Below the pieces are notes generated by a model. It ran no database searches. It had not been told where the DNA came from and was given only the letters and a program-made list of their open reading frames with translations. Shown here piece after piece: positions 9,235-55,715 of a stretch of 64,000 bases of DNA (position 1 is its first letter; each line of letters opens with the position of its first letter). The stretch covers positions 96,864,969-96,928,968 of the forward strand of contig NC_092370.1 of assembly GCF_030028105.1 (NCBI RefSeq). The letters run 5' to 3'. Made by a program: the position numbers and the translations under genes. This DNA comes from Mobula birostris. Lineage: Eukaryota.

Positions 9235-9580
9235 TTTCCCTCCCATTCCCCTTTTCCTCTGTTCCCCACTCTGGCCATTTACCTCTTCTTGCCCACTTAT
9301 CACCTTCCTCCTATGTCCCCTCCTCCTTTCTTTTCTCCTCTGACCCACTCTCCTCTCCAATCAGATTCTTTCTTCTCCAGCCTTGACCTTTCCCACCCAT
9401 CTGGCTTCACCTATCACCTTCCAGCTAGTCTCCTTCCCCTCCTCCTACTTTTTTATTCCGGCACCTCTTCCTTCTCAGTCCTGAAAAAGGGTCTTGGCCT
9501 GAAAGATCAATAGTTTATTCATTGCCATAGATGCTGCCTGACCTGCTGAGTTCCTGCAGCATTTTGTTTGTGTTGCTTAA
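9235..9580 (+). mobile_element. Penelope-like element terminus (pyrimidine tract, decayed hammerhead, 3' tail)
   Basis: AGTCCTGAAAAAGGGTCTTGGCCTGAAAG followed by ATAGATGCTGCCTGACCTGCTGAGTTCC...; homologous to 15365-15759. Confidence 0.7.
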
Positions 9581-11144: not shown

Positions 11145-11235
11145 CAAGGGTCCAGGCCCGAAACGTCGACTGTACTTCTTCCTATAGATGCTGCTTGGCC
11201 TGCTGCATTCACCAGCATTTTTTGTGTGTGTTGCG
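11145..11235 (+). mobile_element. Short Penelope-like 3' fragment
   Basis: AAGGGTCCAGGCCCGAAACGTCGACTGTAC...GCATTTTTTGTGTGTGTTGC; lacks the CTGANGA half of the hammerhead core. Confidence 0.7.
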
Positions 11236-11714
11236 TGTATTGGTCTTTATTGCAAAAGGCTTTGAGTACTGTAGATAAACATCTTAGCAAATGGTCAACT
11301 CTTTTAACATCTTCACAATGGTTTCTGACTATGCGGCCAATGTCAAAAAGTGGGAGAACAGAAATTTTCTTCTGGGTTGAAGAAATCTCACTTCACCATA
11401 ATCATTAATGTCATATCCTATATCCCAAAAGTCTGACAACTTAATGGAGAGACATTAATTGCCTGGTATTTCTGAGGTGGAAGTAGGTGGTTTGCAAGAA
11501 TGATGTTGGATCTGAAACCACAATGAGCTTGTGAACAGCCTCAATACTTGAACCGCCAACTTCCTACAATGTAACTTCATGAACCTCTCTTCTGCTTTAG
11601 CTCATCTACTACTGATCTACAGCTTTGTTTGCTTCCTCCACATTCTTTGTCAATCTCCTACCTCCTATCCTCTTGAAGTTAACCAAAAGTTTTGCTGTCT
11701 ATGTCCTAACCCAG

Positions 11715-14487: not shown

Positions 14488-15672
14488 CTGGAAGGACTGT
14501 CTGGGGCCCTGAATGGTGGTAAGGGAGGAAGTGTAAGGGCATGTGTAGCACTTGTTCCGCTTACAAGGATAAGTGCCAGGAGAGAGATCAGTAGGGAGGG
14601 ATGGGGGGACGAATGGACAAGGGAGTCGCTTAGGGAGCGATCCCTGCGGAAAGCAGAGAGAGGGGGGGAGGGAAAGATGTGGGATCCCGTTGGAGGTGGC
14701 GGAAGTTACGGAGAATAATATGTTGGACCCTGCGGCTGGTGGGGTGGTAGGTGAGGACCAGGGGAAAGCTATTCCTAGTGGGGTGACGGGAGGATGGAGT
14801 GAGAGCAGGTGTGCGTGAAATGGGGGAGATGCGTTTGTGAGCAGAGTTGATGGTGGAGGAAGGGAAGCCCCTTTCTTTAAAAAAGGAGGCTTCCCAATGT
14901 GGCCTTCTATATATTGGGTCGGCTGGGGTGATATACTGCGTCTGGTGCTCCTGATGTGGCCTTCTATATATTGGCGAGACCCGACACAGACTAGGAGATC
15001 GTTTTGCTGAATTCAGGGCCCCAGACAGTCCTTCCAGGTGAGGCGACACTTCACCTGTGAGTCAGCTGGGGTGATATACTGCATCCGGTGCTCCCGATGT
15101 GGCCTTCTATATATTGGCGAGACCTGACGCAGACTGGGAGATCGTTTTGCTGAACAGCTATGCTCTGTCCGCCAGAGACAGCAGGATCTCCCAGTGGCCA
15201 CACATTTTAATTGCACATCCCATTCCCATTCTGACATGTCTGTCCACGGTCTCCTCTACTGTAAAGATGAAGCCACACTCACGTTGGAGAAACAACATCT
15301 TATATTCCATCTGGGTAGCCTCCAACCTGATGGCATGAACATTGACTTCTCTAACTTCCGCTAATGCCCCGCCTCCCCCCGTACCCCATCCGTTATTTAT
15401 TTATATACACATATTCTTTCTCTCTCTCTCCTTTTTCTCCCTCTGTCCCTCTGACTATACCCCTTACCCATCCTCTGGGTTTTTTTTCCACTACTCCCCC
15501 TTTTCCTTCTCCCTGGGCCTCCTGTCCCATGATCCTCTCATATCCCTTTTGCCAATCACCTGTCCAGCCCTGGGCTCCATCCCTCCCCCTCCTGTCTTAT
15601 CCTATCGTTTTTGATCTCCCCCCCCCCCCCCGCCAACCACTTTCAAATCTCTTACTAGCTGTTCCTTCAGTT

Positions 15673-15708
15673 AGTCCTGACAAAGGGTCTCGGCCCGAAA
15701 CGTCGACT
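15673..15708 (+). ncRNA. Minimal hammerhead motif with a core mutation (CTGACAA)
   Basis: AGTC-CTGACAA-A-GGG-TCTCGG-CCC-GAAA-CG-TC^GACT. G8 is replaced by A at 15682, so it is probably inactive. Confidence 0.6.
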
Positions 15709-16225
15709 GTACCTCTTCCTAGAGGTGTTGCTTGGCCTGCTACGTTCACCAGCAACTTTAAAGATGATGTTGAAGAGGTTTCGGCATCCCATGACCAAGA
15801 ACTGATAGATGAAGAGCTGATGCAATTGGAAGAGGGAAGGATGACAATTGAAACCAAATGCAGTAGCGAGCGGACCAAAAGTGAAGTTGTCCAGGAACTG
15901 AATGTGAAGCAACTGCGTGAGATTTTCACTGCGATGACTGCAGAAAAGTACAACTTTAATTTTGAAAGGGTACATCGGTTTAGGGCATATTTGCAGGATG
16001 GTTTGAATGCTTACAAAGAACTGTATGATACAAAAATGCATGAGACTCAGCAGTCAAGCAAGCCTTCCACATCAGCCACAGCAGACGACGAACCTCGACC
16101 TTCGACATCGAGGCAGGCAGACATAAAAGAAGATGACCTGCCTGCCCTGATGGAAACAGACGACACCCCAGTGTCCCACCACCCCAACACCCAGGCCGCA
16201 GACCGATACATTGCCACGGAGAATG

Positions 16226-19082: not shown

Positions 19083-19400
19083 TTAAAGGCATCCGTTAGT
19101 CTTGCGAGACCATGGATCTCCACCTGGAAAGTCTTCACTCTCCAGGGCGTAGGCCTGGGCAAGGTTGTATGGAAGACCAGCAGTTGCCCATGTTGCAAGT
19201 CTCCCCTCTCCACAACATCGATGTTGTCCAAGGGAAGGGCATTAGGACCCATACAGCTTGGCACCAGTGTCGCAGCAGAGCACTGTGTGATTAAGTGCCT
19301 TACTCAAGGACACAACATGCTGCCTCGGCTGGGGCTCAAACTCACGACCTTCAAATCACTAGTCGAATGTCTTAACCACTTGGCCACATGCCCACACGTG
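19083..19400 (-). mobile_element. Full-length tRNA-derived SINE with CORE-like middle and RTE-like tail
   Basis: A box TGGCCAAGTGG (19376-19386); B box GAGTTTGAGCC (19333-19343); CORE-like TTGTGTCCTTGAGTAAGGCACTTAA; TSD GTT(G/A)TGATAGCT at 19071-19082 and 19401-19412. Confidence 0.85.
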
Positions 19401-19575: not shown

Positions 19576-20694
19576 TGGTAATAGCAGCAACAACATTTGC
19601 CCATAAAACAACTTACTGGCACAATGAAAAAAACTCTGGATGTTTTGGCCCTTGGCTTGGCATGCTTGACATAATTTGGCCCTTGTGGAAAACTAATTGG
19701 GGAACCCTGACTTACAGCATTTAAAAAAAAATAATAGCTTTGATGAGTATTTGAGTTTGCTAGTAACATGTTATGGTTGTTAAAGGTGCTAAACCCATTC
19801 CTTTTAGCCATGGAGAAGAAAAATGAAAAAAAAAAATCAGCCTCATTTCGTATTTGGAAAATATCAAGGCAATCCCTTATTCATCTTGGCCTACCATCTA
19901 TTTCAGCAAAATAAAGAGACAAGCACATTGGCAGGTTTAGTGTTACTAATCAGTGTTGAATGGTGATAGACAATTGACCATCCCATTGAAGATTTCCATC
20001 TTCAACATTGATAGGGCCCTACTACCACTATTTCTTCAGTGAGTGCAAAAGTTAAGCACTGAAGCACTCATGACCATGTCTACAGAGGTGTGCTAAGTGG
20101 GTGATCCAACTGGGTTTCTATCTGAGATCTCCACCATCAAAAACAAGTGTTGAACCAATTTAATTCACTCCACACAATACCTAGAAATGGCTGACACCAT
20201 TGCAGACAATAAAGGCTATAGCATCAAAGGAGCTGCAGTACTGAAAAACTGCAATCCAAGAATAACTACAGTTCCGACCAAACTGCTCTAGTACATCTAG
20301 CCAGCGATGCGGGACAATTACATAGGCTTTCCATTTTCCCAAAAGAAATCAAGGGCAATCTAACTTGGTTAATTATTTCCTAATTAATCTATGTTTATTT
20401 ATCAGCTAATTGAAGGCAGGTGTTGTCATTTGTGCTATCAATCACTATTTACTCATTGGCACCTTGCTCACCAATACCCATTTTAGATTTTCAAAGGAGC
20501 ACTTAACCCAAACATTGACCAAAAGCTGAACACTCAACGATTCAGAAACAGCTTCTTCCCATGCTATCCAATTTCTGAATGGACATTGCGCCCATGAATA
20601 GCACCTCACGACTATTTTTTTAATTTCCTATTTTTTGCACTACTCATTTAATTTAATTATATATAGACATATACATACACATACATACTGTAAT

Positions 20695-20845
20695 GGTTCC
20701 AAGGTTGTCTAGCCGAGGAGTGGTAGTGGGGACAAGCTCCCACTACCTAAAAGTACTCCTCACGGCATGACAACCAAGTCCAGCTACTGGCCTTCTCATG
20801 TGGCTTAGCCTCTAAGCCCGGCGGAACTGTTTCTACTGACAGGAG
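20695..20845 (+). ncRNA. Candidate HDV/CPEB3-like self-cleaving ribozyme
   Basis: P1 GGTTCC(20695-700)/GGAACT(20823-28); P2 CTACTG(20784-89)/CAGGAG(20840-45); P3 GCC(20790-92)/GGC(20820-22); L3 TTCTCAT; GT after P1; J4/2 CTGA(20836-39). Confidence 0.6.
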
Positions 20846-21272
20846 AAGGGGCGAAGGCGGGTCCCGGTGCCTTAAAACCAGTGCTTCGGGTAGATGGAGC
20901 TCGTCAGCCTGGGAAGGCAGTCCATCTAAGAGAGGGAAAGCTCTGATTTTAAACCTCCGCTGCCTTGTGGCCATACCCACTCATGGGAGAGGCTTCAAGA
21001 TTAAACCCTGAGGACAAGTCTGGAGCTGGAGTCCCTAATGCAGTACAATGTTGCCTTCAAGCTCGTTCTGGCAACTCCTGCAACGACACTGGCGCCAAGC
21101 TGTATCGGCCCTTGCCCTTCCCTTGGACAACATCGGTGTCGTGGAGAGGAAAGAATTGCTGCATGGGCAACTGCCGGTCTTCCATACAACCTTTTCCCAC
21201 ACCTGTGCCCTGGAGAGTGAAGACTTTCCAGGCGCAGATCCATGGTCTCGCGAGACTAACGGATGCCACCAC
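20695..21272 (+). mobile_element. Full-length non-autonomous RTE-like retroelement (578 bp, non-coding)
   Basis: 11-bp TSD CATACTGTAAT at 20684-20694 and 21273-21283. RTE-like 5'UTR motif GGGAAAGCTCTGATTTTAAACCTCCGCTGCCTTG (family from recall). 3' end TCCATGGTCTCGCGAGACTAACGGATGC(CAC)n. Confidence 0.75.
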
Positions 21273-21544
21273 CATACTGTAATATAAAGTTTTTTTCTAT
21301 TTTTATGTATTGCATTGTCCTGCTGTCACAAAGTTAACAAGTTTCATGACATAGGCCAGTGATATTAAACCTGATTCTGATTTTAATTCCAGAGGTGAGG
21401 TGAGAATTAATGGCCCTGACATGGAAACAAAATTTGGCTGAGGTTGGCATTAAGGACTTATGATAAAAGAGGCTACATTCACACTTAAATCGTCTCCACC
21501 CGAGAATCTCACTGCAAGGTTTTCTCAAAGTAATAAACCGGCTT

Positions 21545-27019: not shown

Positions 27020-28475
27020 AAATCCCATTTCTGACACCTCCCTCCCTGTTCTCGATCTCTCTGGCTCCATGACTGGAGACAAACTGCCGAGTGACACCCT
27101 TTTATAAACTTACCAATTCCCAGAGTTATCTTGACTATACCTATTCCCACCATGTCTCCTGTAGAAATGAAATTCCCTTTTCTCAGGTCCTTTGATTCCA
27201 CCTCATCTGTTCCCAGGATACAGCTTTTCTTTCCAGGTGCCCCCTGTCTTCAAAGAATGGGGGTTTCCTTCCTCCACCATTGATGCAGCGCTTACCCGCA
27301 TCTCCTCCATTTCTCAAATAACCGCACTCACTCCATCTTCCCACCGCCTCAACAGTGAGAGTTCCTCTCGTCCTTAACTACCATCCCATGAGCTTTTGCA
27401 TCCAACACACCATTCTCTGCAACTTCTGTGCTCCCTAAATTTACCCCCCCCTCACCCCACCATCTCCGCTTTCCACAGAGATCACTGCTTCCATGATTTC
27501 TTTGTCCATTTGTCCCTCCCAGCACGTATCCCTGCAAGCAGCTTGAATGCTATTCACCTCCTCCCTCACCTCATTCAGGGCTCCAAATAGTCCTTCCAGG
27601 TGAGACAATGTGAATTTGCTGGGGTTGTCTATTGTGCCCGGTGCTCCCAATGCAGCCTCCTCTACATTGGTGAGATCCACCGTAAACTGGTGGCCAAATA
27701 CTTTAATTCCCATTCCAACATGTCAATCCATTGCCTCCTCTTGTGCCACGCCGAGGCTACCCTCAAGGTAGAGGAGCAATGCCTCACATTGCATCGGGGT
27801 AGCCTCCAACCTGACCGTATGAATAAAAATATTTCCTTCCCGTTCAAAAAAATCCCTCCCCTTGGTGTCCCTCTTCCTCTATTCCCCACTCTGGGCTCTT
27901 ATCTCTTCTCACCTGCCTATCGCCTCCCCCTCCCCTCTTCCTCTATTCCCCACTCTGGCCTCTTAGCTCTTCTCACCTGCATATCACCTCCCCCTCCCCT
28001 CTTCCTCAATTCCCCACTCTGGCCTCTTATCTCTTCTCACCTTCATATCGCCTCCCCCTCCCCTCTTCCTCTATTCCCCACTCTGGCCTCTTATCTCTTC
28101 TCACCTGCATATCACCTCCCCATCCCCTCTTCCTCTATTCCCCACTCTGGCCTCTTATCTCTTCTGACCTGCATAACACCTCCCCCTCCCCTCTTCCTCT
28201 ATTCCCCACTCTGGCCTCCCCTTGCTGTCCCTCTTCCTGCCCTTTCCCCTTTGGTGCATTTTCCTCTCCAACCATTTAACTTTCCCATCCATCTGGCTTC
28301 ACCAGTCACAATCTAGCTATTTTCCTTTCCCATCTCCTATTTTTTTTATTCTGGTGTTTTCCTTCATTATTTCCAGTCCGGAAGAAGAGCCTCGGCCCAA
28401 AACATTAACTATTCATTCATTTCCATTGATGCTGACTGACCTGCTGAGTTCCTCCAGCATTTGTGTGAGTTTCAA
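27020..28475 (+). mobile_element. Decayed Penelope-like element (RT C-terminus, GIY-YIG, terminus)
   Basis: 'FKEWGFPSSTIDAALTRISSIS', 'GVVYCARCSQCSLLYIGE', and a degenerate hammerhead at about 28375-28410. Confidence 0.8.
27868..28218 (+). repeat. Tandem repeat, ~64-bp pyrimidine-rich unit, ~5.5 copies
   Basis: Unit TCCCCTCTTCCTCTATTCCCCACTCTGGCCTCTTATCTCTTCTCACCTGCATATCACCTCCCCC starting at about 27868, 27931, 27995, 28059, 28123 and 28187. Confidence 0.9.
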
Positions 28476-54849: not shown

Positions 54850-54946
54850 CAGTTAGTCCTGACGAAGGGTCGGCCTGAAACGTCGACTGCACCTCTTCCC
54901 ACAGATGCTGCCTGGCCTGCTGCATTCACCAGCAACTTTGATGTGT
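54850..54946 (+). mobile_element. ~97-nt Penelope-terminus insertion within L1 ORF2
   Basis: ATTCCTT duplicated at 54843-54849 and 54947-54953; removing the insert restores L1 'ICASHSLIQFK'. Confidence 0.85.
54855..54888 (+). ncRNA. Minimal type I hammerhead ribozyme with intact core
   Basis: AGTC-CTGACGA-AGG-GTCGG-CCT-GAAA-CG-TC^GACT. Stem I 4 bp; stem II 3 bp; palindromic ACGT in place of stem III. Confidence 0.75.
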
Positions 54947-55715
54947 ATTCCTTGATACAGTTCAAGGTAGTGCATCGGGCCCATATGTCAAAGGATAAAC
55001 TAGCACGTATGTTTTCCAACATCAATCCTATTTGTGACAGATGTAATCTGTGAGGTGAGGTGGCCACTTTAACTCATATGTTTTGGTCTTGTATAAAGCT
55101 AGACAATTTTTGGAGAGATGTTTTTAAAACATTATCAAAAGTCTTGGATCTGGACCTACGACCTAATTTACTTAGGGCAATATTTCGGATTACCTCATCG
55201 AAATCAGGAAATATTCCTGCTTCTGCTCAACGTATGACAGCCTTTTCAATTTTATTGGCTAGAAGAGCCATTTTACTGAAGTGGAAGGATTCTAATCCAC
55301 CTACTGTTTTTATTGGCTTTCCTCTATTATGTCCTGTTTAAGTTTAGAGAAAATAAGAAGTCGGACATTTGATACATCCTTTAAATTTGAGCAAATCTGG
55401 CGACCTTTTATTCAGTTTGATTTATCACTCTTCCAATTTTTTTTCAAAGTTTTAGATTTGATCAGCAAGTCTTTCTTTCTTTTTTTTGGTCATATCCTCA
55501 GAATGGACTGCCCAGTCGCTCTTTTTTTTCTCTTCTTTTTTTTGTATAGTGTAATGGGGGTTATTTCTTCATTTAAAATTCAAAGTTTTTTCTTTCCTCT
55601 TCATGAACTGATGAGAGGAGAATTGCTGTTTTCATTTTTATTATATATTATATACTAGTTTAGCACTATGTATCATTTTGACAAGGTCTATTTCAATCTC
55701 TGCTTGTATTGTTAT

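Follow-up and report, generated by a model that had tools for sequence, protein, structure and literature searches.

The 64,000-nt window analyzed here (Mobula birostris, contig NC_092370.1, positions 96,864,969 to 96,928,968) contains, at window positions 20695-21272, what is probably a copy of a very abundant retroelement that lacks open reading frames (ORFs) and depends on a long interspersed nuclear element (LINE). Its first ~150 nt appear to derive from a self-cleaving ribozyme of the hepatitis delta virus (HDV) type, which would act by the same mechanism as the ribozymes of R2, RTE, and L1Tc elements. This HDV-like character, proposed by a first-pass annotation of the sequence, is supported by the statistics of an anchored descriptor search, the majority letters of the family, covariation in paired region P1.1, retention of the putative catalytic cytosine, and relatives in which loop L3 has its canonical length. 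As predicted from sequence, the family type departs from canonical HDV-like ribozymes by a 20-nt insert that follows the L3 core, precedes the 3′ strand of P3 (P3′), and contains a 7-bp hairpin.

Boundaries and insertion site of the element

The element is bracketed by an 11-bp target-site duplication (TSD) that has exactly two matches in the window; two matches were obtained in 0 of 100 shuffles. The left duplication sets the first base of the element at G20695, as the first-pass annotation had maintained, and the same base is the predicted cleavage base of the ribozyme. The bracket proposed for the element stands, and the 3′ end of the family is corrected to 21267, the terminal ACCAC being private to this copy. 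The G+C content is 55% within the element versus 38% in its flanks. The features of the insertion are the following.

20684-20694, no strand: left target-site duplication, CATACTGTAAT, from an exact match search of the window
20695-21272, plus strand: inserted noncoding retroelement copy of 578 bp, bracketed by the TSD, with the family sequence stopping at 21267
21268-21272, plus strand: ACCAC, five additional letters separating the end of the family sequence from the TSD, absent from the second tail copy; the loose ends of other copies lie at 21267
21273-21283, no strand: right target-site duplication, CATACTGTAAT, from the same search

The longest ORF in the element encodes 105 amino acids. 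No Pfam family was found in the 5 ORFs of the element, and the 105-residue plus-strand ORF had no homologue among proteins 0.55-1.75 times its length, to which the candidates were restricted; a plus-strand coding remnant was ruled out on these grounds. The element is called non-autonomous because it lacks ORFs and Pfam matches and because its 3′ module also occurs in a short interspersed nuclear element (SINE). Sensitive blastn of the element against the window revealed no LINE carrying its head or tail.

Other identities were considered and rejected. A tRNA-like CCA 3′ end, which could be read from ...GCCACCAC plus the CA of the TSD, was ruled out because the family stops at 21267 and ACCAC is private. 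A tRNA-derived SINE head was ruled out because ARAGORN called no tRNA in 20600-21400. Finally, a known RNA family or a retropseudogene of a structured noncoding RNA was ruled out, since Rfam was empty at gathering scores and gave only weak unrelated matches at E ≤ 10.

Predicted ribozyme fold anchored at the first base

The HDV-type descriptor specified a P1 of 6-7 bp with the first G facing U, a joining segment J1/2 of up to 100 nt, a P2 of 5-8 bp in which one mismatch was allowed, a G+C-rich P3 of 3 bp abutting P2 and P1′, an L3 of 5-30 nt, up to 60 nt replacing P4, and the motif C-N-R-A directly before P2′. A separate P1.1 rule required the G after P1′ to face a C in the first four bases of L3. 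Anchored at G20695, the descriptor gave a single solution, identical to the layout of P1, P2, P3, and J4/2 in the first-pass annotation, all of whose letters and coordinates are present in the sequence. The predicted parts are as follows.

20695-20700, plus strand: P1 5′ strand, GGTTCC, with predicted cleavage 5′ of G20695 (descriptor)
20701-20783, plus strand: J1/2 with a long bulged hairpin at 20703-20775, a peripheral domain (minimum free energy (MFE) fold)
20784-20789, plus strand: P2 5′ strand, CTACTG, with A20786 mismatched in this copy (descriptor)
20790-20792, plus strand: P3 5′ strand, GCC, unchanged in 10 of the 14 relatives covered (descriptor)
20793-20799, plus strand: L3 core, TTCTCAT here, with positions 2-3 in P1.1; the majority letters match the CPEB3 loop
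20800-20819, plus strand: 20-nt L3 insert composed of GT, the hairpin GGCTTAG-CCT-CTAAGCC (20802-20818), and C; the 7-bp stem (20802-08/20812-18) is perfect
20820-20822, plus strand: P3 3′ strand, GGC (descriptor)
20823-20828, plus strand: P1 3′ strand, GGAACT, with G.U at the base (descriptor)
20829-20830, plus strand: GT, P1.1 3′ strand, with G20829-C20795 and T20830/T20794 (descriptor and covariation)
20831-20835, plus strand: TTCTA, replacing P4 (descriptor)
20836-20839, plus strand: J4/2, CTGA, with putative catalytic C20836 (descriptor and relatives)
20840-20845, plus strand: P2 3′ strand, CAGGAG, with one A:G mismatch against CTACTG (descriptor)

Thus, the strands are arranged as a nested double pseudoknot requires, P1 begins at the predicted cleavage site, G1 is paired at the base of P1 (G20695.T20828), two pairs of P1.1 join L3 positions 2-3 to the two bases after P1′, and a cytosine opens J4/2 directly before P2′. 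Described HDV-like members typically have a short L3 of 7-8 nt, the length assumed by standard descriptors, whereas L3 of this copy measures 27 nt, and the element is therefore filed as an HDV-like variant rather than a plain member. The three-helix domain that had been assigned to J1/2 was not recovered; this segment folds as the single bulged hairpin listed above.

A chance fit at a base fixed by the TSD is unlikely. Among the G anchors of both window strands, G20695 included, 26 of 25,514 fit the descriptor (2.0e-4 per position), and the P1.1 rule leaves 1 of 25,514, namely 20695. When 20695-20954 was dinucleotide-shuffled with its first G fixed in place, 16 of 5,000 shuffles fit the descriptor, and 0 of 5,000 did so under the P1.1 rule. 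Because the solution of the first-pass annotation was known when the descriptor was drawn up, these rates are somewhat optimistic and the true odds less extreme; a chance fit is unlikely even with odds ten times worse.

Family size and majority letters

No public sequencing run contains more than a fraction of 0.48 of the 31-mers of the element, and at least ten organisms hold 0.37-0.48, which is the signature of a shared repeat family. Contigs of sequencing runs, aligned to the element at 85% likeness, yielded 18,676 and 17,772 pieces from two DNA runs, and a further run, possibly of RNA, yielded 1,675; the family is very abundant. Depth is zero upstream, starts in bin 20673-98 (which holds 20695-20698), and collapses in bin 21271-96, and 273 contigs continue behind 21267 into unlike, A+T-rich sequence. 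The 3′ quarter has 10-20 times the depth of the head.

The variants, of which 40 of 87 rows were listed, are given below as percentages of depth in the first DNA run, the second DNA run, and the possible RNA run. The first-pass annotation regarded A20798, a change of CG to CA in L3, as a possible defect of this copy, and the majority letter at this position is indeed G (57, 52, and 82%). A second majority change, 20796 T>A (47, 53, and 85%), was not foreseen by that annotation, which predicted 20798 only. With A20796 and G20798, the first seven bases of L3 become identical to U20 U21 C22 A23 C24 G25 U26 of the CPEB3 ribozyme. In the hairpin loop, 20810 C>T and 20811 T>A each reach about 29, 29, and 82-84%. 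The change 20812 C>T, which turns a G-C pair of the hairpin into G.U, accounts for <1% in the DNA runs and 56% in the possible RNA run; 20824 G>A, predicted to disrupt a pair of P1, accounts for about 1% and 48%, respectively. At 20828, T>C (26, 30, and 42%) converts G1.U to G1-C, with the pair of G1 retained.

Depth returns ~25 bp past the element, at 21297-21372 and beyond, to about 90,000-148,000 in the DNA runs. The insertion thus adjoins, or sits within, another high-copy repeat.

Relatives read through antisense translations

The ribozyme core lies within an antisense ORF (20750-20980, minus strand) whose counterparts on other copies have been translated by gene callers. We collected 30 such proteins, 1 from a word-indexed search and 29 from a full HMMER search of cluster representatives, and used 25 of them; P0017 and P0028 (long repeat proteins) and P0019, P0026, and P0027 (a 22-residue block from outside the core, repeated in tandem) were dropped. 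The 25 proteins were aligned to the minus strand of the window by tblastn and then by a frameshift-aware dynamic programme, and were back-translated.

The J4/2 cytosine is retained to a high degree: conservation of Val49 implies C20836 in 20 of 21 back-translated copies. A20835 follows in 18/21 and A20839 in 17/21, and the third base of J4/2 is G or A. The view that the A:G mismatch of P2 is specific to this copy also gains support from the relatives. Five of them in a shifted frame (P0006, P0012, P0016, P0021, and P0025) have Glu at the stop of this copy and hence require C at 20786, which closes the mismatch and gives P2 six Watson-Crick pairs. Nine copies in the frame of the ORF have Arg in place of Ser, which fits C20786 but also T20786 or G20788 (partly by eye).

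The hairpin is kept in 15 of the 19 copies that cover the region and absent in 3 (4 by eye). One clean 20-nt gap over 20799-20818 characterizes P0012, P0016, and P0025; P0021, which the programme misaligned, is alike by eye. The hairpin-less relatives have seven bases between P3 and P3′, that is, a canonical L3.

Covariation was found in P1.1. The pair 20794/20830 is T/T in 9 copies, this copy included, G/C in 5, T/C in P0003, and A/T in P0030; it is concordant in 14 of 16 copies, with P0004, P0013, and P0021 ambiguous to the programme and G/C by eye. Its mutual information of 0.66 bits is the highest of 8 testable column pairs, the next being 0.38; it should be noted that a minor state in four or more copies is present in only 5 columns of 20778-20850. 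Both T/T and G/C occur among hairpin-bearing copies (this copy versus P0005 and P0023) and among hairpin-less ones (P0012 and P0016 versus P0025), a distribution not accounted for by a single split in descent. The compensated switch of P1.1 and the kept J4/2 cytosine, as read from these sequences, argue for continued selection on the predicted pseudoknot after the insert arose. Within the hairpin itself, P0010 and P0020 have C-G in place of T-A at 20806-20814, probably through one event, as the two copies are related.

Two relatives, P0005 and P0023, lose their likeness to this copy at about the first base, beyond which P0005 has four Ile codons, corresponding to A+T-rich flanking sequence. 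Judged by eye, P0007 seems to start about 9-10 nt and P0030 about 3 nt inside the element, which suggests 5′ truncation within the ribozyme-headed family; these copies are too few for a pile-up of 5′ ends. In J1/2, near 20765-20770, P0003, P0005, P0007, and P0023 have six extra codons (18 nt, by eye), located directly 5′ of the 3′ strand of the closing stem. No second full copy was found in the window, and pattern scans of metagenome contigs and viral contigs found no further copies.

The best-conserved part of the antisense translations lies downstream of the ribozyme core.

20880-20975, plus strand: central block with a strong MFE hairpin

The 22-residue antisense translation of this block occurs as 2-3 tandem repeats in P0019, P0026, and P0027, which suggests that the central block, in a unit of ~66 nt, was amplified somewhere into a tandem array.

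Shared 3′ tail module

The last ~190 nt of the element are a module common to two SINE-like families with different heads.

21078-21267, plus strand: 3′ tail module common to another SINE-like family (blastn match), presumed to be the end recognized by reverse transcriptase

The sole match of this module in the window by sensitive blastn is 19278-19088 (minus strand), with 87.5% identity over 192 nt. Both tail copies end together at ...GGATGCC and then diverge. This tail-only match belongs to a different, tRNA-like SINE and not to the ribozyme-headed family. The sharing of the tail by two families explains the far higher depth of the 3′ part.

By eye, the SINE-like copy at 19088-19400 (minus strand) has a different, tRNA-like head upstream of the common tail. 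Motifs in this head, recognized by eye, are presumably counterparts of box A and box B. ARAGORN called no tRNA in the head of this copy.

Other repeats in the window

Further repeats of the window lie outside the element. A tandem array at 27805-28282 consists of six to seven copies of a 64-bp C+T-rich unit with 94-96% identity in the middle (families D1 and D2), and a single related unit is located at 9239-9308. The short repeat D8 has three copies (11155-11237, 15692-15774, and 54872-54954). Two adjacent 97-nt direct repeats at 14915-15154 are 92% identical, their starts being 143 nt apart (family D13).

Comparison with known ribozymes and retroelements

HDV-like ribozymes are found at the 5′ ends of retrotransposons that lack long terminal repeats (PMC3185411; PMC4035085; PMC3774820). 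Like the ribozymes of R2, RTE, and L1Tc/ingi elements, the predicted ribozyme begins at the first base of its element, follows the order P1-J1/2-P2-P3-L3-P3′-P1′-P1.1-J4/2-P2′ (PMC3774820; PMC3185411), and combines a P1 of 6 bp with a P2 of 6 bp, tolerance of mismatches, a large J1/2, a dispensable P4, and a cytosine that opens a 4-nt J4/2. Unlike them, it has a 20-nt hairpin insert between a 7-nt L3 core and P3′, resides in a cartilaginous fish, and obtains no score from the HDV-type models of Rfam; the insertion of the element is not site-specific, having an AT-rich target and an 11-bp TSD.

The combination of a ribozyme with a 3′ end in a non-autonomous element has also been described (PMC3414825). 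Like the SIDEs of R2 and the NARTc of L1Tc, the element is short and ORF-less, with a ribozyme head and a 3′ end presumed to be read by a LINE (PMC3414825; PMC3383444); it likewise has a TSD, no coding capacity, and many copies. Its family is far larger than that of the Drosophila SIDEs, described as rare, and, unlike SIDEs and NARTc, it has a tail that is also used by a tRNA-like SINE.

The loop of the CPEB3 ribozyme consists of U20, U21, and C22 followed by 5′-A23CGU26-3′, in which G25-U20 forms a metal-positioning wobble, and P1.1 is formed by U21/U38 and C22/G37 (PMC4836649; bioRxiv 2022.09.22.508989). Given the majority letters of the family, the seven bases of the L3 core equal U20-U26. 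As in CPEB3, P1.1 consists of one G-C and one U/U, with GU after P1′, and J4/2 has 4 nt. Unlike CPEB3, the element is a TSD-flanked repeat outside the CPEB3 intron, lacks P4, and has a large J1/2 and the hairpin insert; moreover, 5 of 16 copies, and a further three by eye, have G-C instead of U/U in P1.1. The element does not match the Rfam CPEB3 model, and neither the intron site nor the compact 68-nt fold with P4 is found in it.

Active R2 ribozymes of silkmoth have no P4 and a J1/2 of 216-498 nt that is partly needed, and they lose cleavage upon a C-to-U change; mismatches in P2 of R2 ribozymes are also precedented (PMC3774820). A J1/2 helix can speed cleavage by bringing P1 and P2 together (PMC4908430). 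The element resembles the silkmoth ribozymes in its lack of a P4 stem and its long J1/2, whereas L3 of those ribozymes is short and conserved and their P1 includes 28S sequence. Among the features that the first-pass annotation listed as unusual, the L3 hairpin thus remains so, while the absence of P4 and the large J1/2 have precedents in R2 ribozymes (PMC3774820; PMC4908430).

Searches of an open-access literature collection found no description of delta-type ribozymes in cartilaginous fish and, apart from SIDEs and NARTc, none of SINE-like elements with ribozyme heads. LINEs headed by a ribozyme, and derivatives of them with internal deletions, are known already; the L3 insert and the CPEB3-like core in a repeat of a non-mammalian vertebrate are new.

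Proposed mechanism

By analogy with R2, RTE, and L1Tc, the element would be transcribed within a longer RNA. The ribozyme would then fold with P1, the big J1/2 hairpin, P2, P3, L3, P1.1, no P4, and the J4/2 cytosine, and would cleave itself 5′ of G1, again as in these elements. A LINE reverse transcriptase would recognize the 3′ module and copy the RNA into a nicked target, and the insertion would leave a target-site duplication and an element starting at G1.

A more specific reading, which we put forward tentatively, is that the hairpin-bearing form is an active, selected subclass of delta-type ribozymes in which a helix extends from the 3′ side of L3, the hairpin being a functional module, and that the hairpin-less relatives, with an L3 and a P1.1 equal to those of CPEB3, are living kin of the retroelement source of CPEB3. 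In such an active subclass, the hairpin would, for example, block the loop-loop dimerization of the palindromic L3 core that CPEB3 crystals display, or serve as a protein-binding or regulatory handle.

Contrary evidence and alternative explanations

Several observations weigh against the interpretation of the 5′ region as an HDV-like ribozyme, the first of them concerning the predicted fold of this copy. The MFE fold of 20695-20850 has z = -5.08, and in this fold, computed with RNAfold, which cannot represent pseudoknots, a nested alternative stem (CCTTCTC 20791-97/GAGAAGG 20843-49) takes precedence over the ribozyme pairings. A structure constrained to contain P1, P3, and the L3 hairpin is 6.3 kcal/mol less favorable than the nested alternative, and P2, weakened by its A:G mismatch, contributes just -1.7 kcal/mol compared with -9.1 for the competing stem. 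The nested stem being energetically better, this copy does not favor the ribozyme fold. The private T20796 strengthens the competing stem, whereas the majority letter A removes a pair from it. Judged by its sequence, this copy is probably a weak or dead ribozyme because of A20798 (the equivalent of CPEB3 G25), A20786 in P2, and T20796, which feeds the competing stem. The first-pass annotation had likewise suspected an impaired copy of an intact family type, and G20798 in 52-82% of depth, together with relatives that have C at 20786, accords with this.

Moreover, the window has no match at gathering scores to Rfam 15, whose models include the HDV, CPEB3, and drz families, and 20500-21500 yields no ribozyme family with E relaxed to 10; such models would set a heavy penalty on the inserts in J1/2 and L3. 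A search of an open-access literature collection turned up no natural L3 insert as a precedent among the papers listed, as judged by titles and the beginnings of abstracts, and such an insert might disturb the active site. The element is contained in none of the runs recorded as RNA. The contigs show no pile-up of molecule ends, being a type of data unable to show one, and 20786, 20794, and 20830 are not among the variant rows listed.

The relatives also contribute contrary evidence. For each residue, back-translation took the codons nearest to those of this copy, with third positions defaulting to its letter; alignments around frameshifts are uncertain, and the copies are kin by descent. Apart from the C-G change in P0010 and P0020, the implied changes in the hairpin comprise 4 wobble-compatible versus 8 disruptive ones. 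Changes in P3 are confined to G>A losses at a CpG plus one G.U, and none of the back-translated copies has two-sided changes in P2 or P3. The 5′ strand of P1 is reached by P0005 and P0023 only, both of which keep it, a base too small for covariation. Since the copies are decaying insertions, disruptive transitions are to be expected; P2, P3, and the hairpin are still without positive support from covariation.

Among the alternatives to the ribozyme interpretation, the one that survives best, unlikely as we consider it, regards the HDV-like head as a slowly decaying relic, in which the hairpin-bearing form no longer cuts and the 5′ end at G1 results from initiation at an internal promoter. A precise 5′ end fits initiation as well as cleavage, and the 5′ end of L1Tc, with its dual Pr77 region, is described as both promoter and ribozyme (PMC3383444). 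The L3 insert, without precedent in the literature searched, and the preference of this copy for another predicted structure point in the same direction. A decaying relic is difficult to reconcile with the abundance of the hairpin-bearing form, which is represented by 15 of 19 relatives and tens of thousands of contig pieces, and with the catalytic cytosine implied in 20 of 21 copies. The compensated switching of the P1.1 pair inside hairpin-bearing copies speaks for selection after the insert arose.

It is far less probable that the resemblance is due to chance and that the 5′ region is another structured RNA with the nested 20791-97/20843-49 fold, for example a signal for reverse transcriptase or translation. 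The nested alternative is indeed the MFE fold, with the z-score given above; the Rfam ribozyme models do not match, and the descriptor, drawn up after the fact, is loose. Nevertheless, anchored match rates are 0.1-0.3%, and no shuffle satisfies the P1.1 rule. The alternative stem needs T20796, which is replaced by A in 47-85% of depth, the hairpin-less relatives reduce to a canonical 7-nt L3, and the P1.1 pair covaries. That the antisense ORF encodes a real small protein, which would explain the kept letters and for which 29 matching database proteins could be adduced, is hardly credible and was ruled out, as the ORF has no Pfam family and many relatives are frameshifted or truncated; besides, the matches are gene calls on repeat copies, and the 20794/20830 switch alters amino acids.

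Biological implications

Delta-type ribozymes are sought with descriptors in which L3 has a set length of 7-8 nt. Tens of thousands of family members bearing a helix in this loop would show that the loop of the active site tolerates or even exploits an insertion, and would mean that current searches undercount the delta-type class. Since natural copies differ in the presence of the hairpin and in having U/U or G-C at P1.1, they are, in our opinion, a ready mutational series for asking how the geometry of L3 and the strength of P1.1 tune cleavage. Because its L3 core and P1.1 are the same as in the mammalian CPEB3 ribozyme, the family allows the retrotransposon origin proposed for that ribozyme to be tested in a non-mammalian vertebrate. 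For genome annotation, the family would represent a SINE-like class of cartilaginous fish that has a putative ribozyme head instead of an RNA polymerase III promoter and the same tail as a tRNA-like SINE.

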